Source: Phallusia mammillata (Eukaryota). From it: DNA of 64,000 bases. This document shows positions 22,148 to 41,000 of the stretch, one piece after another (position 1 is the first letter of the stretch; the number at the start of each line of letters is the position of its first letter). The position numbers and the translations under genes were made by a program. The stretch spans positions 17,112,001 through 17,176,000 of the forward strand of contig OZ281501.1 in the NCBI GenBank assembly GCA_965637545.1, read 5' to 3'. The notes under the pieces were generated by a model. The model did no database searches, had not been told where the DNA came from, and saw nothing but the letters and a program-made list of their open reading frames with translations.

Positions 22148-22993
22148 CTGGTCTTGGGTTTCTTGGGTTGCAAGCCATATCATCAGCAAGCATCAGAATG
22201 ATTTGACTAAAAATAAATAAAAGGTGGCAAGTTAACACATTTTTTTATAATTGATATTTAACATTTACTCACAACATATATTTAAATTTTAAACAATGCT
22301 GTTTCCATTTTAGTTTTCTATTCGTATTTTTATTTGACAACTTGAATAATAGTACTGTGCAACACAAATAACAGAAGAATATAAAAACCTGTCTGGAATG
22401 CCCAGTCTTTTCACACTTCTATAGACAGATAGAGCATTGGCAACATGGCGATAGTTAAACCAAAATCTTGACGTGCAAACCTACAAAAGTTAAAATTTAT
22501 GTTATTTTTTTCCTGTAGATATGAATTTTTTTTTGTTTCTTACCAATACAGCCCAGTTGTTTGTATGGGAACTGCCAGAAAAGTGCTTGTTAACCTGAAA
22601 AACATTTTGTTTATTCTATCACCGTACTAACTGTTTCTCAATATGTAATGGTTATATATTTCGACTGGCACAGACAATACTAAAATCAAGGCACAATTGT
22701 GAATTATTGTTGGCAGCTGGTATGTAAAATTGTAAGACATTGTCAAAAATTACAACACTTAATTCCAAATAATTAAGGTGTTAGAAAGTGTAAATCTTGG
22801 ACATTTATTACATTTCTACTAATATTCAAAAACTATTGCTTGACCTTTGTGGTACTTAACAAATGATACAATATTGAAAATGTTCAATAAAACTACAAAC
22901 CTCTTGGGTAACTTTTGTATTCTTTGCCAAAGAAGCATGACTGGTCGAAATTATGTACAAGAGAAAAGCTAATGGAGTAATATTAATATGCAT
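22148..22993 (-). CDS. PIGK: GPI-anchor transamidase catalytic subunit (PIG-K/GPI8), 5' partial: coding exons 1-4
   Basis: Minus-strand exons 22993-22901, 22594-22544, 22480-22389 and 22206-22148, all GT-AG and phase-consistent (295 nt). They give [31 protein letters not shown]|[17 protein letters not shown]|[31 protein letters not shown]|[19 protein letters not shown]. The [20 protein letters not shown]...RLGIPDS...[13 protein letters not shown] string is the GPI8 signature, and exon 1 looks like a signal peptide. Not in the ORF track. Downstream exons not found in the window. Confidence 0.92.
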
Positions 22994-22999
22994 GTTGCC

Positions 23000-24357
23000 A
23001 TACAAAATCACAGTGTTACTACAATAAGCATAGGAGTCAGAACTATGAACTAATAAAAAATTTAATCCTAAATTGAAGTGCTAAAGAAAAATTTATGGCA
23101 GCAGTATTGCAAAAAAATGTTTGTTACAAATATATACATTTTATATGTGCATATTTTCTGTGTAATTTGTAGCATAGTACCAATGTTATACCAATATAAC
23201 ATAAACAAGCATACATAATAATAAATATTCCTGTGTTAAAACAGGTGTACACAATAATTGCCTAAATAAACCATGAAACAAGCAATACCAAAATTATTAC
23301 AATAAAAACTACAATAAATCGATACCAATGTACAAATCGAAACATATACGCGCAAAAAGTAAATAAACTGCAAAATCCGCATTAATGAGTAATTGCAGTC
23401 ATGTAAGCCGCGTTTTAAAAATTTGCAAAGCTAAATCGAATTTCCTGGCATTAGCGAATCGGCTCGGGTAACCACTGCGAGCCAAACTACCCATGCGTGC
23501 AATAACTCGTATCAGCACATGTTTTCATGCGTTTTGATAACGGATGCTGTTTTAGAACGTTGTGCAAAAATTTTGTACCCATATATCAGCGAAAAAATTA
23601 GCAAGTGAAAATAACTATGTAAGGTAAAAAAAAACAGTTGGAGGGCAAGGTTTTTTTTTATCTGGGACTAAATTTACACCAAGGGGTTATTTGGCATCTC
23701 GTAGAGGTATATTTTATTATTTTTGAGTTTTGGGAATATAAATATTGTGTCAAGGATCCCTGGGTGAAATTTTGTTTTTGAAACCCTTCATTGAATGGGA
23801 TGAACAATTGACAAACAGTCAATAAATTACTGTACACTGCCAAACATAACAAACATTAAGTATTGATTTAAAACTACACAGGCACATTCGTGACAAAATG
23901 CACACCATTTAAAACCCATAACATGTCAAAGCTTATCTATAAATATTGAGGGAACGGCCTGTTAAATGTCTTCAGACGTGACTGCTGGTGGTACCGGTTG
24001 CTATGGCACAGACAAATGGACGGTTGCCAAGTTTCGTTTGAACGCCTTTTTCTGATCGTTTGGTCTCGTTGTGTGGCATGATTGACTTTTTTCTTGCTTA
24101 ACAACTAACGAAATAAGGGATTTTTAGTGTAAACTGCTGCAAAAACGTTGGTAAACTACCATACCAGATTAAAAATGTATACTGGAAAATGTAAACTATC
24201 ATAAAAAGTACTTTTTTATTTGCCCAATACACTAATACAAAACAATATATTGATTGTAGAGTTCCTTAAAAGTGGTTAAACAAGTTACAGAGAGCATGAT
24301 TTAATTTGTTTGTAATTTTCAGAACATGCAATATAGGCTACAATAGTTATTGCAAAA
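23000..24357. promoter_or_regulatory. Head-to-head (bidirectional) promoter interval PIGK <-> PARP2
   Basis: Divergent start codons at 22993 (-) and 24358 (+). CpG-richer patches near 23400-23560 and 23950-24080, an X-box-like GTTGCTATGGCAC at 23997-24009, and a probable PARP2 5'UTR intron 24151-24322 (TTG|GTAAAC...TTTTCAG|). Confidence 0.55.
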
Positions 24358-25983
24358 ATGGCTAGAACAAAAAAATCTGCTGCAAAAACTGCTGGATCTC
24401 CAAAAAAGACACCAACCAAGCGCAAGGCAGATGATGCAGCAAAAACTGTTACTGTGAAAAAAGAAGATGATGTACCTAGCACCTCATCCGATTCTGATAA
24501 ACAAGAGAAAGTTGTTACATTTTCTGGTGCAGTTCCAATTGATGATCAGTGTCCAGTAGACGTGAAAAAATATCATGTAGCAGTTGAAGGCGATACAGTG
24601 TACAATGCAATGCTAAACCAGACCAACATTGGTTTCAACAATAACAAGTACTATATACTGCAGGTTGTTAAGCACAACAAGCTACCAGAGTACCACGTTT
24701 GGTTTAGATGGGGTAGGGTAGGGAAAGTAGCAGGGACCACATTTAAACCAGGCACATTACAGTCAACTGCTGATCTTTTCAGAAGAAAGTTTCAGGAAAA
24801 GACTGGCAACGTTTGGCATTTTAGGGAGAACTTTAAAAAGAGGAAAGGAAAATATGACATGGTTGAAATTGATTATGGCGATGATAAACAAAAAGAGGAG
24901 ACTGATGCTGCTCCAAAGAAACCAAAAGTTGAGGTCCCATCCAAACTAGACAAGCGAGTTCAAGATGTTTTACGCCTAATTTTCGACACTCAAGAATGGG
25001 AGGCATCAGTGAAAGAGATGAAGTTTGATATAAAGAAAGCACCTTTAGGAAAACTGACCAATCAACAGATAACAGCTGGATATGAGTCGCTGAAGAAAAT
25101 CGAAACTTGCATTCAGAATAAAAAGATGGGGAATGAGTTAACTGAAGCATGTAGTGAGTTCTACACCAGAATTCCTCATGATTTTGGAATGAAACGTCCA
25201 CCCCTTATTAAAACACCACAGGAATTGAAAGAAAAATTGCAGTTAATTGAAGCTCTTGGTGACCTACAAATTGCAATAAATATCTTGGATGAAAAGCCTG
25301 AAGACGATAATGTCAATGTCCTCGATGGATACTATAAGTCTCTTGGTTGTGATTTGGTGCCACTGAATAAAACTGACAGTGAGTACAAAGAAATTGCAAA
25401 GTATCTAAAAAATACTCATGGAAGCACACACAGGCAATACACTCTGGAAGCTGAAGATATCTTTCAAGTTCACAGAGAAAATGACAGCAAAAGATTCAAA
25501 GAAGACATTGGCACTAGAATGCTCCTTTGGCATGGATCTAGATTAACCAATTGGTGTGGCATTTTAAAGCAAGGTCTCAGAATTGCACCCCCTGAGGCCC
25601 CAGTAACTGGATACATGTTTGGAAAAGGTGTCTACTTTGCAGATATGGTTTCAAAGTCTGCCAACTATTGCTTCACAAGCCATAGGCAACCTATTGGATT
25701 TCTACTTGTTTGTGAGGTGGCTTTGGGAAATATGAATGAAAAGTTACATGCTGATTGCTATGCTAACCAACTTCCAGATGGAAAGCACAGCACAAAAGGT
25801 GTAGGTCAGACAGCACCTGATCCAAAGCAAGCCACCAAATTACCAGACGGAGCAGTTTTACCTTATGGAAAACCTAAAAAAGTCAATCAGAAGAATGCAT
25901 ATTTGTTTTACAATGAATACATTGTATACGATACTGCACAAATAAAGCCAAGGTACCTTGTAAAAGCTCGTTTCAAGTACTGA
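24358..25983 (+). CDS. PARP2: Poly(ADP-ribose) polymerase 2 (basic N-terminal region, WGR, helical domain, catalytic ART domain), 541 aa, intronless CDS
   Basis: WGR motifs YNAMLNQTNIGFNNNKYY and WFRWGRVG; helical domain KKAPLGKLT..QI.AGYESLKKIE; catalytic LLWHGSRLTNW, GLRIAPPEAPVTGYMFGKGVYFADMVSKSANYC and YNEYIVY (H-Y-E triad intact). These motifs fit PARP1/2 rather than PARP3, and there are no zinc fingers or BRCT, so PARP2. Confidence 0.93.
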   Translation: MARTKKSAAKTAGSPKKTPTKRKADDAAKTVTVKKEDDVPSTSSDSDKQEKVVTFSGAVPIDDQCPVDVKKYHVAVEGDTVYNAMLNQTNIGFNNNKYYILQVVKHNKLPEYHVWFRWGRVGKVAGTTFKPGTLQSTADLFRRKFQEKTGNVWHFRENFKKRKGKYDMVEIDYGDDKQKEETDAAPKKPKVEVPSKLDKRVQDVLRLIFDTQEWEASVKEMKFDIKKAPLGKLTNQQITAGYESLKKIETCIQNKKMGNELTEACSEFYTRIPHDFGMKRPPLIKTPQELKEKLQLIEALGDLQIAINILDEKPEDDNVNVLDGYYKSLGCDLVPLNKTDSEYKEIAKYLKNTHGSTHRQYTLEAEDIFQVHRENDSKRFKEDIGTRMLLWHGSRLTNWCGILKQGLRIAPPEAPVTGYMFGKGVYFADMVSKSANYCFTSHRQPIGFLLVCEVALGNMNEKLHADCYANQLPDGKHSTKGVGQTAPDPKQATKLPDGAVLPYGKPKKVNQKNAYLFYNEYIVYDTAQIKPRYLVKARFKY

Positions 25984-28099
25984 AGTCAAACCCAAAATTT
26001 TTAAATGATATGAGGTGGTTTTATCATAGAGTTTTACTGTTTGCAGTGTGATTTCAAATTGATTTTAGTGTTTTAGAAGTACTTATGTGTGTTGATTTAT
26101 TGCTTAGCACTTGATTTTGGTACATATTATAATTCTGTGAGCATGCATGCATGCACACTCTTCTTCAAACTATGTGTTCATTGTTGTAGTTCCAAATCTG
26201 TCCTGTGCAAACCTGTAAATGTTTTCATTTATTGATTGTTCTTTTCGGTAACCAGTGAAAATTTGTCTGGCAACTCGTCATGTTATTGTTCTGTAAATAT
26301 ATCATGTACTTCATAATCACTGTTACCCAAATCAAGTTTCCCTATATATTTTAAAGTTTGTGTGCAATTCAAATGTTTAACTATTGTTTTCAGCACATAT
26401 CTAATTGCAAATTGTGTACATGCACTTCAGGTGTTTTTGATTGTACTAAAACATATTCGTTGTACTGTTTGTTCGAAATAAAGATGGGTACCAATAAAAT
26501 ATGCGTGTCCACTTTGTCCAATGCTGTCTGTTTGGGGGATAAATTATAGTTTGTTACTTTTTGTATTAGACCTTCTCTTAATTAAACATTTGGTATCGAA
26601 GTTAATCAGAAGTTTGGCTAATTAAAAAGGGTAATCAACAATTACCCGTAGGATTTTAAGCGCTTGGCATTGCTTACCAGAGGTTGTTGAAGTATTGTGT
26701 TTTCAATGGTTTGCTATAGAAACTGTCATGTTGGTGACTTCAAAAAGCGTTTTATACAGGTTTAGGCAGTGAGAAAATAGAGATGTCTTGCAGTTGACAA
26801 ACTAAAATACATCGTGTTTGCAAATAAAAGCTACATAATACATTGCTGTTTGGCTATAACCCAATTACGTATAATGATCTCAATTGTAACTATTTTTTAA
26901 GTTTGTTTTCAATAAAGAACCCAATGTATCATTTAAAATGAGTCAAAAAATCTGTGCTGGTTAAAGCTGTATCAGTAAGGGGGGCTTCTAAAAGGCCAAC
27001 AAAATGGAGAGCAGACACTTTTTCAACATCTGCAAATGAAGTAAAAAAAACTAGAAAGGTGGCTTTCTGATATACTTCCATTTTATATATTCTATACGAT
27101 ATTTAACAATTTACTATACACATCGTTTTATCTACACATATGATTGTTTTTGCAAGCAAAAACTAATGGGTCCCCACATGCGCGTTTGTGCGGATATACC
27201 GTAAACAAACGTCCTGGTTATTTTTTGAGATTCTTAAGAAAAAACTTAATAAGGTCAGTTCACGGTCAGTTTTTAAACACAATTTTCCACAACTGAAAAT
27301 GTGCTTGATAACTTAATAAAACAACATAGCATAGCTGCGCAAAAACAGCTGATTTCTAATCACCGACACGACTGTCTCGTAAAACGTTCGTCCGGACGTC
27401 AAGCTGAGCACTCCCGCTGCATTCACCCTCCTTAAACAAGTGAATTACTCCCTTGAGAGTTGAGACTTCTGTCTGACTGACAGTGTACACATATCATGGG
27501 CTGTAAAAGTAACTATTTGGCCGATTAGGGCAAAATTTTAAATACTGAACGAATAACCTACTGCAAACGATTGTTTAACATTTCAGCACATTACGGCTTG
27601 TATTTTTGGCCTAAAACTTTTTATTTTGGGGTTTAAGGGGTAAAATGGGTGAATCCAATAAAAAGTTACAAAATTCTTTAGAATACCGTACATTGCACCA
27701 ACCAAAAAAGCATGAAACTCTCAGATTATGTACTTTAGTCAGTACGGCCATTTAATTTTTTTTTCAATTTGGGGGCCTGTGGGTGAACCGCTGGGTCGTT
27801 TGGGGTCAAACTTCAGGAGGATCAAATTTGGATTAATAACAAACATCTGTCCCAATTTGAATAAATTTAAAGCACTCTTTCTTGACCAAACGTGTCTCAC
27901 AAACCAGCGTTAGACAGAAAAAAGAAAAAAAAATACGGACAAAAACAATATGTGTCCCCTTCAGGGAAGGGGACCCATAATGAAGATATCCCAAGCTCTT
28001 CAAGCTGCAATAGGACTGATATTTAACTCCCAATTCTGAGGAAAACCTAAGTCTGTAGTAAATTTGAAACCCACATGAATATGAAATGAAGTGTCCCCC

Positions 28100-29424: not shown

Positions 29425-30165
29425 TTACACCATGCTGTCAATTAATGAATCTCTCATTTTGGTTTGTACCGCGGCGGCAGTGTGATTGTCCCCAAGTTTG
29501 AAAACGCTTTCAACTACCGATAGTTCTGTGCTGGTTGTATCCAAACCGCAAAATGCACACCAGTCATTTACCACCATTCCAGCACCAATGACTTCACTTC
29601 CGCGATTTATAGTGCCAGCAACAAGAGGCACCTGCAGAAGGGAAGAGAGTTCGTCCTGATCTTCAACACTAGTTTTAGGATGAACTAAACCTCCTTGGTT
29701 ACTGAAGCAACAATAACTCCCAACTAAAACTTGATCAGTGACAGTTTGGCGAAAGACTTCCACTTTTAGACTGTCGGCTAACATTTCTTCAGTTTCTCTG
29801 TCGAGGTCTGGATGCACAAGTGCAACATAATCGTTGCAAGCCACAACGTTACCAAGAGCAGACAAACGTTCCTCCACCCTTTGCAATTTTACCTCATCAG
29901 GCAAACAATTACGAATATGCTGCAGTTCTTGGTCAGTTGTTGAGCTGGGTACGAGCAAACCGTGCCGATTTCCAACGCACATTCGGCCTATAATCCGACA
30001 TCCACCTATTGAGGCATGCACTACTGGAATTGTATCACCAAGTTCAGACTCAAAAACACTGTAGAAATTTTCTGAACCACCAATGGCGACAAGGCAATAG
30101 GCGTTAGTGAGCTTGGAAAATACTCCAATTTCATTGTTGTTTTCAAACTGTACGCGAACAGCCAT
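29425..30165 (-). CDS. EIF6: Eukaryotic translation initiation factor 6 (60S anti-association factor), 246 aa, intronless CDS
   Basis: [39 protein letters not shown]...[14 protein letters not shown]...[26 protein letters not shown]...[27 protein letters not shown] is canonical eIF6. The true ATG is at 30165; the ORF-track start at 30198 is not an ATG. Short 5'UTR intron: donors 30265/30293, tandem acceptors 30219/30213. Confidence 0.97.
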
Positions 30166-32017: not shown

Positions 32018-35000
32018 ATGGGGTGTTGTGGAGATGATGGAGATTCATCTGAAGATGGAAAATATGGTGAGTACAGTTTCAAAACATTACAAGCTTAAAC
32101 AGAGCTTAAAACCTTTACATAATTTATTATACCTTACCTAATGTAAACCTGTGTTGATATGTTCATGTAAATATTTAATGATCACTGATTTTTTACATGT
32201 GATTGTTGAAATAATAGTGTGTTTTTGAATTAAATATTAAAGAATCACTGTATTGCTCAGTAATTTGAACAGGATATGTTTCATTTCCTCACAAAAATAT
32301 CTACAAAGGATGGTTGAGTTAATATTTATGCAAACAATATACAATTTGAAAACATTGGTTTTTATGACATTTCAAATTAAAAAGCAAAAATATGTACATG
32401 AACAATAATCAATTTGAAAAAATTATTTATGTGAACAATATACAATTTAAAAAATATGTATGTGAACGATATACAATTTGAAAATAAATGTATGTGAACA
32501 AAATACAATTTAAAAACACACACTTAGTTTACATGACATTTTAAGCAAGCTAAAAAACTTTAATAAAAAGTTTTGGGGTTTAGCAAAGTTGTGTGTGCTC
32601 AAATCTTTTAGTTCAAAAATAGCAAAACAAACTAGAAGCCAGTCCTCACTTGTGAGAAGTGCACTTATCTCTTCATTGAAAAGCTATGATCAAATATTGT
32701 TCTGCGGTGTTGTGTGCCGTTGTCAGAGAACAACGTCATAAACCCCTTTACTACCTCCATTCAAAAGAGAGTTTGTTTGAACAATGATGAAGTCTGTTTG
32801 TCATTTGAGGTCAAATAACATGAAAGCAATACCTGGTATAGGAAACTGCATATCCTCATTTAATACTTCTAATCAACATTTAAATGGGTTTTGCAAAGAA
32901 AGTAAGTGTTTTTTTAAAAACAAAACACCTTGTAAAATTGTAACAATAGCAACTGCTGAAGCATAAAGCATACCTTTCTGTTTCACAATGGATAACAATG
33001 CGTGTTATGTATAACATAGCCATTAGAATTACACGAGTATTTACCATTGTAATGATATACACGACCCCGTTTACCATAATATAGTGGACCCAAATTAGCC
33101 AGTCACGTCACCTAACGCAATAAAAACAGCTTGGCGAGTTTGAAAAGCGTCATAGGACCTCACCACGATAAGTAGGCAGTTGTACCGTTAACGCAGTGCG
33201 TCATTTGTGTTCCTATCTCGTCCATAGTGATTTGTGAAAATAGGTGACTCGTATTTCATTTGCGTATGTAGAATGACTGTGAAAACAAGTGTATACTGGT
33301 CTTAGTGCCTGCCTGTGTTCAGCTTCCCGTAAACGTCCCAATACGCTTAGCATATACAGGAAATGCGTAAGGTTCTATTTTGCCTCATTTGAAAAATGAA
33401 GCGCCATTAAACACGTGAATCATATCAATCCATAAATTCAAGTTATAAAACAAGCGTTTGACAGACCAAGTCAAGTAGAGGTTATTTCTTTTCGAAAGAT
33501 TTGATAAAAATGTCAAAACGGACACAAGAACATGTTGACCTTTTTGAAATTAAATTAATCGAATTTGTTTTAATTCAAAACAGCAACCTCTTTGTCCGAT
33601 GTAATATTTTTGTGGAATTATATTCGAAAATGCTTTTTGTTGTAGTTTCGCGTCTAATACTCCCAAAACAAATGCATGCTTATGCTGACTTTTTTTAAGT
33701 ATAACGGTTTGTTTTTAATTCGAAAAAGTAACCTCTATTGAGCGGTGTAATATTTTTGTGGAATTATTTACCAAAGTTTACAAAGCAGACTTGTTGTTTC
33801 GAACGTGTTTTGCCAAGCCAAGTTCTGTACAGGGCAAAGTTCTTGCAACACTTGGGCGTCTGTCTGAACGTGGGCATATATCCGGGAAATGCCAGGCCTT
33901 CATGTCCTCGTGGTATGGCTACAATCAATAGCTTCTACTTTTACTCCCACTTGCTGTAATTAGAGCAATCCTAAATCTTTTTTGTTTGTGTTATACAAGA
34001 AGGGGGCAAGTTTTAAAACATACTTACATGCATGTATTTCCGTGTGATGTAATTACGTTTATATAGACTTAAACTGTATACAGTACAATTGCGTTGCCTA
34101 AAACCGAAATCACTCTACGTTATTACGTGTAGGCCTACTATTTAGTTTGTTCGAAATACAGTAAAACGGCAGTATTATGGAAACAACACCAGATACGTAA
34201 ATACGACAGAACTCGTTAAACTTGCTTGTTTAGAGACATTCATCGTTAAACTCGCGTGTTTAGAGACATTCACTTTTCCGACAAAATATGTTACATTTGA
34301 GGTTGGATTTTTATCTGTGGACGGCCAGTGCTTGAATGCGTTAAGCTCTCAGTAAGTAGGTCGTTGAGCTGCCTGTTTTATTGCAAGTCTGTTGAATGAT
34401 TGTGTTCTCTTGCCTGAGGGGTTATGAATACATTGGTTAATATGGGTCCCAATGCACAATAAACATGTGCATTGGAAAAATGTGCTAAGCTACCCTTCAA
34501 GTTTTTCAAGTTGGTGACTTAAATTTAATTTACCCAACTGGTTCTACTTGGTTAGAGTGATGTTACTTAATTTTCTTGCTCAGGTAAACATAGTTGTTTG
34601 AGATGATATTAGAACCCCTTTCTAAACAAGGTGGTTGTGTTAACTACTCAGTCATCTTGGTGGTTTTGTTTTTACGTTTTGCTGTAAAATCCACTAACTA
34701 AAATAATTCATTTCAAACTTACACCTTTTAAACAAAAAAAAATGCACAGTTAAACCACCAATAAATTTCTTTTGCAATGATTTTTATTCGCCCAATTGTA
34801 TAAACAGACTTGCTTTGGTAGTTTAGGCTTTGCAATTGCCTACGTAGATGTTTATTTGTTTAACTGAGACTGTCATGCTTATCCTTTAAAATCCAGTATC
34901 ACTTTACCCTTTGGTACTTTTCCTTTTCAAAAACCCTTTTGTAGACAAACCAGACCATTATATGTTTGCACACCAATCATTTTTTTAATGAATTGATAAT

Positions 35001-38000
35001 GGCAAAGAAGCACAGTACAAAATCAATAAAAAAAAGATTATTTGAAGTTTTGTTTGTCACGAATCAAAAAACAGAAAACATAGTGCAAAAAGACACAAAT
35101 CGGCTGTACAGTAAATTATATTGTTAGAAGTGAACTGGATCGAATTTTCTTTTTCTGTTGTTCCTTTCTTTCCTTTTTGTGGTCTGGTGTGTCCTCTGCA
35201 TCATATCTCGGCAACTTATTTCCATGGTACACCAGCAGCTCAGTCTTTGCTTCGTTAGCAAACTTGGCCCAGAAGTATACACTCTGTCTATTACCCTCCC
35301 CATTGGTCACTACATAATTAAGCAAGGCCTTGAAGTCCACATCTTCATCGCCATCAGGGACAATCCTTGCTGTAATTTTCTTTAATGGATTAATGACTTT
35401 TATGAATTCAGTAGGAGTGTTGTTTATTTTGGAAAAACAAGCATAGGCCTCCACAAAAAATGTTTTTTTGTCATGGCTTTGAATGTCAACTTGTTTTGGG
35501 GCAGGGTCCTCACTGCCTTTGGAATCTGATTTATTGGTACCCTCATCAATTTTGGCAATCATGTTACTTGCACAAGTTTTTCTGTGTTGAATCCAATGCT
35601 TTATTTGGCAAGCCTGCGTGCAGTAAAACACAACATAACATTCCCCACATCGCCTAAGCTCTTTTGATGGTTGTTCGCAGAAGGCACACACTGCATTTTC
35701 TTTCTCTTCCCGAATTATACAAGATCGCATACATGTGTGTACTACTTTTCTTGTCTTGTCATCTTTTGCAAGGTCAAGAGAGTGCTTGCCATTTACCATA
35801 GCTTTAGGGTCTGCCCCATTCATAACCAGTAAGCGCATGCAGTCTCTGCTGCCACTTGCTGTCGCAATGTGAAAAGCAGTGGCTCCTGAATGGGCCTTTT
35901 TGTGAATATCTGCCCCATGTGTAATTAGTTCCTTTACAAAACGTATATCACCTCCTTGTCTGCAAGCAACCATCAGTGGCGTAAAACCTTCCAAAAGTGT
36001 GCCATAGTTAACGTCCACCTTTTTTTCAAGCAGGCGGGTAAATCCTTTGAAGTAACGTGCACCAATTATCCACTGAAGTGCAGTTCGGCCGTATACGTCA
36101 CGTGTATCTATGGTTTTTACATCCCGCCTTTCATCAGCGTAATTCTCGCAATAAGTGTCGAATATGCTCATAAAGGCATATGCATCCTGTTCAAGAGCCA
36201 TTATAGTAACAGTGTCCAAGTTAGACCTAAATGGCTGCACTTTGGGGTCAAAATCCTCAAGTCCATCCAGAATGTTGTCAGTTTTGAAGTTGTCCTTTTT
36301 CCGGTAATCTAAGTAGTCATACAAGTGGCCATGCAGGGGCTTTTCATACATTCTGTAGTAACTGGTTGTTTCAGACATTATAATGCCGTTGAAGCACACC
36401 AACACTTTGAAATGTGTTTTTGAACAGGAATTACAGTACACTAAGCACTATGAATCAAAAGTAAATGTAGTTACTTTTTGTTCACTAATACATCAGTGAA
36501 AACATTTATGTTAACACTGTCGCTACTCTAAATTAACAGATTGCATTTATCAAAATGTGTTAAAACTACAAAACAGCACACAAATTATTCAGTTTAAACT
36601 GACCACATTATCTAACATTTAACAAAAATATAAACGCAGTGCTAAAGTTTATTGCCACATTAAACTTCGTTGTATTTCACTGGAAGAAATGCTGCAGCAT
36701 TTATAATTTTCAGTTTACTGGACAGGTACATTTTAAAATTCCTTGTTAATCTTCTAAAACAAAATAGCCAATTTAGTTTGCGTAGTACACAATATCTCAA
36801 ATTCAACGCTGTACTAATCTGCTGTGCCCAAATCTAAAAAGCGTGCACAAACACAATCTAAACCTTAGCTGTTATCAAACTTAAACTAGTTCCTGTTTTT
36901 CAGCACTTGTCGGCTGACGCACTGAAGCGTGAACGTGTTCAAACATGCGTGACGAGAAAGTACCTAAAAAAATAAACTCTTTATAAAGCAGGTTTAAAAA
37001 AGCAAATGCTTCCCACTTTTTTCAATAATTATTCACAAAAATATTCTTATAATTGCTACATAAGTTGCGTGTGTTGTTTTATGTTTTCTATTGTTTCGGC
37101 GTGATGAAAAAGCGTTTAGAACGTTACATACGCAGAGCCTATAAATAGACCTACCTATTCACTACAACATGATTTCGTGTGTGACAATTGTACTCAGTAA
37201 TCATCTCACACTTGTCAATACATGTATTTTGTCGCGTTAGCCTGACAAGTACAGGATGTATATCATGTCAGTCCTAGGTAATGTTATGAAATACGGTTTC
37301 TTCTGAAGGCGTTAATGTATTCCGAACCTGAAATTCCGTTTTTAGTTGTGTGCTCATGTGAAGCCAGGTAAAACGTTTCGTAGTGCGAGTCTCCATTAAG
37401 CGATTAGGTCAGTTCGGCCTATAAGTGGTAGGCTTCTCTCCAGAAAGCATTGGACTGTACGTGTAATTGAGTTATAATTCGTTTGTTGGCTTGTAGGCTC
37501 ATGGCAAAAATATATACGTTTGGATATATTGTTTTTTGTTTCAGACATTAGCAGTGTGAAAGTTGTAACCGCAACTGCAAGCTTTTTAGCCAAAAACGGT
37601 TTGCCAAACAAAAAGTACAAAATATTATAAAGTTAGGCGGAAATACTGCAAGTTTTGATCAGCCTTATACATACATGTGTTGTAAAACTGCGTTTGACTT
37701 GTTTTTATTTAACAAAGTGTTCAAAGTCATATTCGTTGTTGCTGTATCCCTATTCTTTGTAAATTCGAAGAACTCTGATTGAGAAAGTGACTTGTAAGAC
37801 TTTTTTCTTGTTGCTGTTTACATTGGTGTACTGCCGACTTTTGTTTCTGGCACCCAGGTATTATGTTCTAGTAACAAAATTCGATACGCAGCGCCTTTGT
37901 AGTGAGCTATGCCGTCGTGTATCATCATTATTACTGCCTGAATAATTTGTCATTCATCCATGCCCGAACAGAACTGTTTTCTTAGCTGGCCGAGAGATAT

Positions 38001-41000
38001 GACTTGCTCAAAATGAAGTTTTAACTAGCTTTGTGGCAGTGATTTTAAAAATCTATTACAGGACGAATATATTTGCAAAATATTTCACTAAATTGGAATT
38101 GTTATCTAAGATATATGACAGTATTTTAATTGTTATCTAAAATATGTGACAAGATTTGTTATGACGCAGTTAAAACTGTTTGTAAGTTTATAACAGCAGG
38201 TATATTATGCGGTCGCACTTTGAGTAAAAATCAGAGCTGTACGTTACAAATGAACAGGTGTAACTAGTATAATTAACATTATTTCCGTTGGTTGCATGTA
38301 CTTTAGCTTGTAGGTGAAGGTGAACATTGTTGAATACTTTCACTCTGAAACTTTTGTATTGTTTACTGAACCTTCATTATGGGAGGGTGCTGCGGAAAAT
38401 CGAGCTCAGGTAAAATACGTCACACAGGCAGTAAAATCCTGGTGCTTTGTCCTTGAACAAAAGCTTTACGGCTCAACAGCACAATAAATTTTTTGGCAAA
38501 TACGTTTTTCTTTGTCTCTCCCTTGTCCCCCTGTTTACTCGTCTGTCGATGGAAATAGCTCTCTGCCTACGTGCGAAGGGCCTGGAAAATTTTCTACCCC
38601 TGAAAGTTTGTATGTAGGTACCAAGAACCCTATTAGGTAGTTTTATATATACTGCCATAAAAATATACGGCTATCCTTTGGCTTTGGCTGTTTGTAATAT
38701 CAAAATATTTCAATATATTACGCGTTTAATATTGTATGCGTTGTTTTCGAATAAACATGTTTTACGATTCACGCCCATCACGTGACAGTGCTTTCCAATC
38801 ACGTGATTTCAAAATACGATTAAACAACAACAGGCACATATGGCTGCTTCACATGTTAAACCAATTCGGTTGCACCATGTTAAAATTTGATAATATATAT
38901 TGAACGCTCTTTGGGAATACAATATGATATCAATGTTTAATAAACTAACTTTCGAAGTTTCGATTTCCAAAGCTGTTGGCAGACCACTCAAAATATGAAA
39001 AAAAAAACATAAAATTGTGACAAAAACTGGATAAATTATGTGTTATTTGAGCAATTCATTTCGTGTATTGTTGGTAAAATGGTACCGTTAGCGTTTTAGA
39101 CATGCGTCACTAAAATGACAAATTTGTCATGGCACCGTTTCTCGTTCTCATGTCAATCATAGAAATATTAAATCACATGTAATTCCATGTACAACCTAAT
39201 TATTCTAAGATGATTGTTTTTATTTAGCAAAATCTTTTTAAGTAGTGTTATCAATTCTTAAAAGCATTTTGTGTAAGATAGAAACGCTACCAACGAACTA
39301 CCGTTTTTTTACGAATGATATTTTTGTGTTTTAGGAAAGGCGAGAGAGTTCGACCCGGATTTCAAGGGTCCTATGAAAAACAGGTCGTGCACGGATATCT
39401 TGTGCTGCCTGCTGTTCTTTGTCTTCATACTCGGATACATTGTCATCGGAATATTTGGTGGGTTGGAATAATCTAACTTAAAATAAATTTATTTTCCGAA
39501 AATGCCCAAACCTGATAGAATATATGTTTTTGTTGTTATCGTCAGTGGTTGGATTTCAATTTTTTGTCAGCCGGTTCTATCACAAAAGTCATATTTTTCA
39601 GCCGGTTCTTTTACAAAAAGTCCTTTGGCAGTAACCAGTAATGCTAACCAGTTCGCTGATCTCATAAAATTTCGTAAGGCGGTTCTATAGAACCGGTGCG
39701 AACCGGCTGAATTCCACCACTGGTTATAGTGCTGTATACACACACGTTTTTGAAAGCATTGTGAAAAATGTGTGACTTTAAATGGAAAATGTAGTTACAA
39801 GACGACACATGTTTATGAGATATGTTTGACATTTCAACCAGCACCTTTGGTTATTCTCGCTCTTTTAAACCCTGTTACGAACTCAGAAACGAGATTTGGC
39901 GACTACGAAACTATACTAAGAGTTTATCTAAGAGGCTTGGGCCTAACCCTTTCCACTTTCGGTGAAATATTTTCCCATGGTGACAACGTTGTTTTTATTT
40001 TTAGCCTGGCTCAATGGCGACCCGATCATGTTGCTGTACCCCACTGACAACCAAGGAAGAATCTGTGGGGTTGATTACACCGACCTGAATTTACAGTAGG
40101 TCCAAGGTTGCTCAATTCTTGCTCTATGTAAGGTCTTATGGCCCACCGCTAATATGTTTTAATGCACAAAGGAAGGGATTTGGGCCCATCCGATTTAAAA
40201 AGTTTCGTTCTGTAAAAAACACAGATTTATTTACGTTTTATATAGGTGGGCTTTATTATCTGTCGGTAGCTTAGGTGTAAGATTGAAAATTAAGCTTAAG
40301 AAAATATTTTTGTTGCGAAATAAAATTGTTCAACTAAGCCAGTAAACATTTCGATCAAACATTCAAAATAATTTTCGAATTGCATTTTTCGAAAAATCCA
40401 AAAAATGTTCATTTGCAGTGCTGTAAAGGTCAACAATACCAGTAGGGAGTCGGTATTTTTTTAAACTACGGCTAGACCAAAATACAACATTCATGCATCT
40501 CAACATAAAATTAAAATATGAAGTTTTTAAGTGGATTGGGCCGTCTCTACCCAAGCAAAACAGGGTTTGGCCTCTCCGTTTATTTTTGTATTTCAAGTCG
40601 TCGTGACTCGACGCGTTGGGAAAACCCTCCCTAACTCTTTTGTTAAGTTGTTTGCTGAAAGGATAAAACACTGGGAGAGCTTGGTCTCGTCAAAACACAA
40701 TACTAAAACAACTTTTCGCTGAAGCGAAAGTTTTAAAAAAGCTCTTTAACGAACGTTCACAACGCCATGTCTTAAATAACCTATTTTGTGCTTCGATTTT
40801 AAACTCAAAAACTTTTCACCTTTTAATTTTTTCAGTCGCAATTAGGGTACTTTTGACAGAAACTGTCGGTAATGTAGTTAAGGAATGGTCACTAATTCGT
40901 GATTTTTAACCCAAGTATATGGTTTTCTAAACTTGTGTGCCATTTTTAGACCCTAAATAAACTCCTACATAATATTGTGTTAAATGCGCATGTACATTTT

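Follow-up and report, generated by a model that had tools for sequence, protein, structure and literature searches.

The closest described counterparts of the sequence reported here are the H3TM N termini, which are defined by the motif iM-Z-R-X-K, found in 48 among 20,996 human proteins and enriched in chromatin proteins (PMC8166343). H3TM peptides bind PHD and Tudor domains in their K4me3 form and NuRD when unmethylated, and their K4 is methylated in vitro by SET7/9; PHD, Tudor or NuRD partners are on record for the VRK1, BCL11B and TSHZ1 peptides, and no in vivo methylation of H3TMs was found (PMC8166343). A second system is PAF15/PCLAF, the N-terminal VRTK of which is gripped by the PHD finger of UHRF1 like the ARTK of H3 (PMC7060239). 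Mimics of the H3K9 site carry ARKS or ARKT (the G9a automethylation site, and also LIG1 and WIZ); the EHMT/G9a motif is [ASGNLKEC]-R-K-x with an invariant R-K, and a loose version of it fits ~8,230 human proteins (PMC10611923). The NTR (N-terminal region) of human PARP-2 is natively disordered, comprises a nucleolar localization signal (NoLS) at residues 4-7 and a bipartite nuclear localization signal (NLS), and has a weak affinity for DNA; activation does not require its first 39 residues (PMC4770219), and recent cryo-EM work still removes the NTR as disordered (PMC13635751). PARP is absent from the main text of the H3TM paper (PMC8166343), and our search of the literature returned no paper linking PARP2 to histone mimicry.

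The locus investigated here lies in a stretch of 64,000 nucleotides (the window), for which a first-pass annotation had claimed that a PARP2 protein starts with a histone H3-like tail. An uninterrupted open reading frame (ORF) of 541 amino acids on the + strand (24358-25983), opened by the ATG at 24358, displayed the following organization:

24358..25983, + strand: PARP2-like coding sequence, single exon, 541 amino acids plus stop (ORF list, Pfam, PDB match, catalytic columns, transcript contigs)
24601..24834, + strand: WGR domain (Pfam PF05406, residues 82-159, E 2e-17)
24940..25335, + strand: PARP regulatory (helical) domain, PARP_reg (Pfam PF02877, residues 195-326, E 5e-44)
25378..25974, + strand: PARP catalytic domain (Pfam PF00644, residues 341-539, E 2e-72)

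The domain order (WGR, regulatory helical, ART catalytic, and nothing else by Pfam) corresponds to the PARP2 layout, and the Pfam scan of the protein returned neither zinc fingers nor BRCT domains. Human PARP2 was the closest solved structure (E 1e-159), ahead of PARP1, and the H-Y-E catalytic triad was present as H392, Y426 and E520 in invariant columns of an alignment of 29 sequences. These results uphold the identification of the protein as PARP2, and the gene is intact. A WWE domain (PF02825) precedes WGR in most fish and many invertebrate PARP2s (P0041-P0120), and the tunicate proteins are without it. The N termini of teleost PARP2s are strikingly uniform (MRRTRSSRNKSQ...), with an MRR start in 46/119 sequences, which points to a candidate conserved, uncharacterised N-terminal motif in these fish.

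All top relatives of the protein were tunicate sequences (Ciona intestinalis, 62%; C. savignyi, 60%; Styela, 58%). A maximum-likelihood tree placed it within a well-supported clade of 21 rows that holds the short tunicate PARP2s, with P0030 and both Ciona species as its nearest rows. A single-exon eIF6 gene, 87% identical to Ciona intestinalis eIF6, was found at 29428-30165 on the - strand, and thus opposite to PARP2 at a distance of ~3.4 kb; the Ciona locus L001 shows the matching order and orientation. Because this order is common to the window and L001, the window PARP2 is orthologous to the Ciona gene, which is likewise intronless. Synteny beyond this pair is unconfirmed: tblastn with the ORFs of Ciona FUT8 returned no match within the window. 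Every tunicate PARP2 gene examined was a single uninterrupted ORF, namely those of the window, Ciona and Clavelina from the short clade and P0007 from a longer clade (compared loci: window 24358-25983, L001:6001-7614, L002:3001-4734 and L003:6001-7587). Since single ORFs occur in both clades, the intronless form is the normal state here, and it suggests an old retroposition or intron loss that predates the tunicate PARP2 duplication.

Three public runs from the same organism (X1, X2 and X3), labelled RNA by guess and RNA-like in their behavior, were compared with the window over 22800-27300. PARP2 transcript contigs extended over 24321-26044 (X1), 24337-26010 (X2) and 24321-25457 (X3), run depth was zero over 23102-24309 and 26424-27027, and no differing letter was seen in 24358-24408 in any of the three runs. 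The contigs begin 21-37 nt upstream of the ATG, so that both sequence and transcripts place the motif at the N terminus of the protein. Ahead of the coding sequence, one further feature could be read:

24316..24357, + strand: 5′ leader with an acceptor-like ttttcAG (24316-24322), a small upstream ORF (uORF) and an in-frame TAG (direct reading)

The ATG stands in the context AAAAATGG. The in-frame TAG (24334-24336) is located 24 nt upstream of it and downstream of the acceptor-like site; therefore, the frame cannot be lengthened by an exon further upstream. Past the ATG, no other in-frame Met occurs until about residue 85, inside WGR. The assignment of ATG 24358 as the true start of an expressed PARP2 is sound, and on this point (in-frame TAG, contig starts at 24321 or 24337, 17 codons free of variants) the first-pass annotation held. 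The X1 and X3 contigs share their first position, 24321, which coincides with the AG of the acceptor-like ttttcAG; this position may represent a fork between spliced and unspliced forms produced by trans- or cis-splicing. The uORF comprises six codons (MQYRLQ-stop, ATG 24326 to TAG 24346, + strand), is out of frame and stops 12 nt short of the ATG of PARP2.

Other features of the window were recorded alongside. The terminal exon of an upstream gene occupies 22898-23059 (+ strand), where contigs of all three runs join at 22898, a splice acceptor, to sequence absent from 22800-27300; these contigs end near 23059 and are followed by ~1.26 kb without cover before the PARP2 transcript. Downstream, the segment 27028-27178 reached a word depth of ~170-1400 in the runs and appeared in many contigs with differing flanks and, to either side, loose ends. 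We take it for a probable dispersed repeat that many transcripts carry, and it has no Rfam or tRNA match; Rfam and tRNA scans of the window as a whole likewise gave no matches. An open stretch of 443 amino acids with ankyrin repeats and a zf-MYND finger lies at 35119-36447 (- strand) and was all that the ORFs scanned inside 32018-38409 showed.

The resemblance to H3 resides in the first codons of PARP2:

24358..24408, + strand: 17 codons of the finding, M-ARTKKSAAKTAGSPKK, 7/12 in register with H3 1-12 and identical in the X1, X2 and X3 RNA contigs
24361..24372, + strand: ARTK, equal to H3 residues 1-4 and fitting iM-Z-R-X-K (H3TM; direct reading, definition from PMC8166343)

The codons ATG GCT AGA ACA AAA AAA TCT GCT GCA AAA ACT GCT GGA TCT CCA AAA AAG encode MARTKKSAAKTAGSPKK. 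Removal of the initiator Met had been presumed and would be allowed by the Ala that follows; the mature protein would then begin ARTKKSAAKTAG. Set against H3 residues 1-12 (ARTKQTARKSTG, as printed in PMC8166343), direct reading reproduced the likeness as first described, with identities in register at A1, R2, T3, K4, A7, K9 and G12 (7/12) and the swaps S6/T6 and T10/S10. The ARTK is the sole one in the six-frame translation of the window. Given that the H3 comparison was picked post hoc from a genome-wide read, the P values obtained by shuffling are upper bounds on surprise: at least 7/12 identities had P = 5e-4, 2e-4 and 6e-5 for the first 16, 30 and 55 residues, the BLOSUM score of the in-register match to H3 1-12 had P = 7.5e-5, and residues 5-12 alone (3/8 identities) had P = 0.06, with a BLOSUM P of 0.009. 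The H3 likeness is thus nominally above composition, and most of the signal is in ARTK. By Pfam, the tail is followed not by a histone fold but by the WGR, HD and ART domains. An origin from a nearby H3 gene was rejected, as no H3 gene is present within the window.

We then related the start of the protein to those of other PARP2s. ARTK was found in 0/118 other PARP2 N termini, the window being the sole carrier among 119; the motif is therefore not conserved, an outcome that had been set beforehand as counting against the mimicry claim. The typical start of the other 20 clade members is M-P-[RK]-x-[KR], usually with KRK[QS] within a few residues (MPRKK in both Ciona species, MPSKK in P0030, MPRTK in Clavelina, and also MPRSK, MPRAK and MPKKV), and the alignment has the consensus MPRxKxxxKRK. 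Across the 21 members, P (19) or A (2) stands at residue 2 and R (14), K (6) or S (1) at residue 3, and residue 5 is K in 11/21; the T3 of ARTK is found elsewhere in the clade. With PRKK in the syntenic Ciona orthologue and PSKK in the nearest relative, only P/A2 and the basic residue 3 are kept, and ARTK does not behave as a conserved short linear motif. Because the clade starts with M-P-[RK]-x-[KR], the R2 and K4 of the mimic are an inherited basic family motif, and this x-R-x-K frame together with one Pro-to-Ala change (residue 2 codon CCA in Ciona, GCT in the window) results in ARTK. Judged from these starts, ARTK appears to be a variant, by one residue and in this species only, of the basic tail for nuclear import that its relatives have. 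When residues 1-56 alone were used as a database query, 31 word-sharing candidates were scored and none reached E <= 1, as expected of a fast-evolving low-complexity tail.

Within the clade, just one further protein starts with Met-Ala, P0027, an additional PARP2 copy that shares its ENA contig with P0011. It begins MARKTSRASKRS, so that its mature end would be A-R-K-T like H3 7-10 and the ARKT site of G9a, and represents a second, independent Pro-to-Ala change yielding a histone-like start.

Beyond ARTK, the N-terminal region of the window protein displayed three features:

24358..24519, + strand: disordered basic N-terminal region, residues 1-54 (AlphaFold2 pLDDT 25-35, compared to 80-97 for the domains)
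24397..24417, + strand: SPKK (residues 14-17) and TPT-K (residues 18-21), S/T-P-x-K motifs (direct reading)
24418..24426, + strand: KRK, residues 21-23, conserved basic core of the clade (after an N-terminal basic cluster in 18/21 clade members)

S/T-P-x-K motifs such as SPKK are typical of the tails of H1 and of (sperm) H2B, and those found here would be putative minor-groove-binding and CDK-type sites. The window tail resembles these tails in its SPKK 14-17, its TPTK 18-21 and its K/A/S/T/P-rich composition, but it lacks a globular histone domain and contains the motif just once or twice. Two clusters of basic residues separated by a spacer form the classical bipartite NLS pattern, and K5K6, a 12-residue spacer and PTKRK fit it on direct reading; KRK 21-23 is the likely major site of such a signal. 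The tail is also like the human and mouse PARP-2 NTR in being short, disordered, basic and located ahead of WGR, and the PARP-2 NTR contains import signals and has some weak affinity for DNA, while catalysis does not depend on it (PMC4770219). In contrast, the two sequences are unalignable, and the human NTR, in which residues 4-7 form an Arg-rich NoLS and K21/R22 and K36/K37 a bipartite NLS, lacks a Z-R-X-K start.

Taken together, we consider it probable that the N terminus is an import and DNA-tethering tail, the first residues of which happen to equal H3. In this explanation, the PARP2 orthologue of an ascidian related to Ciona, which is expressed, intact and encoded by a single exon, truly starts with codons 24358-24408, and these open an intrinsically disordered, lysine-rich NTR of ~54 residues. 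By analogy with human PARP-2, this NTR would most likely serve nuclear import via the clade-conserved KRK 21-23, bipartite with K5K6, and make weak, non-specific contact with DNA or PAR via SPKK, TPTK and scattered Lys residues. The H3 resemblance would then have arisen from the inherited M-P-[RK]-x-[KR], the Pro-to-Ala change at residue 2 and the K/A/S/T-rich composition beyond. An import and tethering tail agrees with the pLDDT values below 50 throughout residues 1-54, with residues 5-12 that by themselves are not significantly H3-like (P = 0.06) and with a K9 position that has no obligatory Arg at -1. It is less comfortable with the in-register match, which is nominally unlikely under composition-preserving shuffles (2-5e-4 for identity, 7.5e-5 for BLOSUM, again as upper bounds on surprise), and with known cases of real H3 mimicry in which 4 N-terminal residues suffice (PAF15; VRK1, BCL11B and TSHZ1). 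Moreover, Pro2 (19/21) and basic residue 3 (20/21) are the best-conserved NTR positions in the clade. Their conservation hints at a constraint on the extreme N terminus itself, which a plain NLS would not need.

These last points would fit a working H3 mimic, in which the free A-R-T-K end is read like unmodified or K4-methylated H3 (by PHD fingers, RBBP4/7-NuRD, WDR5 or UHRF1-like readers) and tethers PARP2 to chromatin machinery; enzymes of the SET7/9, MLL or Haspin type may modify this end, and the ancestral P-R-x-K starts would act likewise. We regard such a function as unlikely, with some chance left to it. The initiator Met is followed by one of the small residues that the motif allows (G, A, S, T, C, P or V), here Ala at residue 2, Arg and Lys occupy mature positions 2 and 4, and the predicted free ARTK end, as the first-pass annotation had stated, equals H3 1-4. 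By sequence, the start formally qualifies as an H3TM-type motif. Its fit to iM-Z-R-X-K is exact, and none of the human H3TM peptides tested comes as close to H3; like the H3TMs, the motif is situated at the N terminus, in a disordered region and in a nuclear chromatin-associated protein (Chen et al. 2021, PMC8166343). Its Z is Ala as in H3, and related tunicates have P-R-x-K like VRK1, TSHZ1 and HIVEP1. The motif fits 9/21 clade members (compared to 48/20,996 human proteins), although this fraction is inflated by shared ancestry and does not count independent events. Residue 2 is Pro or Ala in 21/21 members, which permits Met removal. N-terminal Pro also precludes N-terminal acetylation. For the Ala of the window protein, acetylation is possible. 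The confirmed start codon and expression speak for the mimic too, as does the precedent of PAF15 among DNA replication and repair proteins. PAF15 is likewise a genome-maintenance factor with an H3-like free N terminus in a disordered tail and Lys residues further along, but its mimicry is conserved in vertebrates and was validated structurally, in extracts and in cells (PMC7060239), whereas the window ARTK is a non-conserved candidate.

The pattern of conservation within the clade argues against a working mimic. R2 is changed to K or S in 7/21 members and K4 is absent in 10/21; over half of the clade has lost one or the other of these two residues, which such readers grip. Compared to the human H3TMs, the window motif is a sequence-level assignment, kept in 9/21 clade members and, as exact ARTK, in one species only, and even for the human candidates methylation in vivo was not found. 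Among the specific forms that a mimic could take, it seems improbable that the short tunicate PARP2 N terminus (free Pro/Ala-Arg-x-Lys, perfected to ARTK here) is a genuine H3-tail surrogate that docks PARP2 onto readers of H3 in its unmodified or K4-methylated form (RBBP4/7-NuRD, PHD fingers, a UHRF1-like PHD). If it were, it would provide a direct, PAR-independent link from a DNA-break sensor to chromatin-modifying complexes.

The first-pass annotation had extended the mimicry to a histone code, with a K9-S10 register used by G9a-, HP1- and Aurora B-type enzymes and K5-S6 as an HPF1-dependent auto-ADP-ribosylation site cross-talking with those marks. We consider this very improbable. It can draw on A7, K9 and G12 in register, a T at position 10 and the BLOSUM similarity of residues 5-12 (P = 0.009, an upper bound on surprise), but identities across the same residues are at chance level (P = 0.06), and none of these matches is kept in Ciona or P0030. 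The supposed K9 is preceded by Ala at position 8 (A-A-K-T), not by Arg. HP1 chromodomains and Aurora B depend on the Arg at this position. The R-K is also invariant in the substrate motif of EHMT1/2 (PMC10611923), and on this ground the K9-S10 register is not supported. The tail does share with the ARKS/ARKT mimics a Lys between small residues, a basic disordered segment and a T after the Lys; in contrast to them, its in-register Lys has no R-K, and the loose motif is matched only by a generic K-R-K-A (residues 21-24). The tail contains one K-S dipeptide, and Ser-ADP-ribosylation prefers K-S sites (PMC6172693). However, chance alone should give such dipeptides in a tail rich in K and S, and a single one is no evidence for modification at K5-S6.

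That the ARTK end is an annotation artefact and never made, with the true start in an exon further upstream or at a Met further downstream, or with a gene that is a dead retrocopy, is hardly credible: the intronless gene, the acceptor-like ttttcAG 36 nt upstream of the ATG and the small out-of-frame uORF raise the suspicion, but a wrong start was rejected on the in-frame TAG between acceptor-like site and ATG, the next Met inside WGR and the contigs from 24321/24337, and a dead retrocopy on the intact ORF with every catalytic residue kept, transcription in several samples and the single ORFs of the Ciona and Clavelina orthologues and the other-clade tunicate gene.

Of the histone-like tail first proposed, the H3-equal first four residues at a real start therefore stand, and conservation and the K9/S10 register do not. 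The observation is real and probably ordinary, a candidate addition to the H3TM motif class from one species. The H3TM class, the PARP2 NTR and the functional precedents are all already known, and at most PARP2 as a candidate carrier is the new part. With it, one ascidian PARP2 joins the candidate H3TM N termini, as do, more loosely, related proteins with P-R-x-K starts, and the case illustrates that a single substitution in a basic import tail easily yields an H3-like start. Were the ARTK end to be read as H3 is, histone-tail readers would find a docking site on a DNA-repair PARP itself; this would be a new coupling of break sensing to chromatin remodelling and a test case for a minimal histone mimic.
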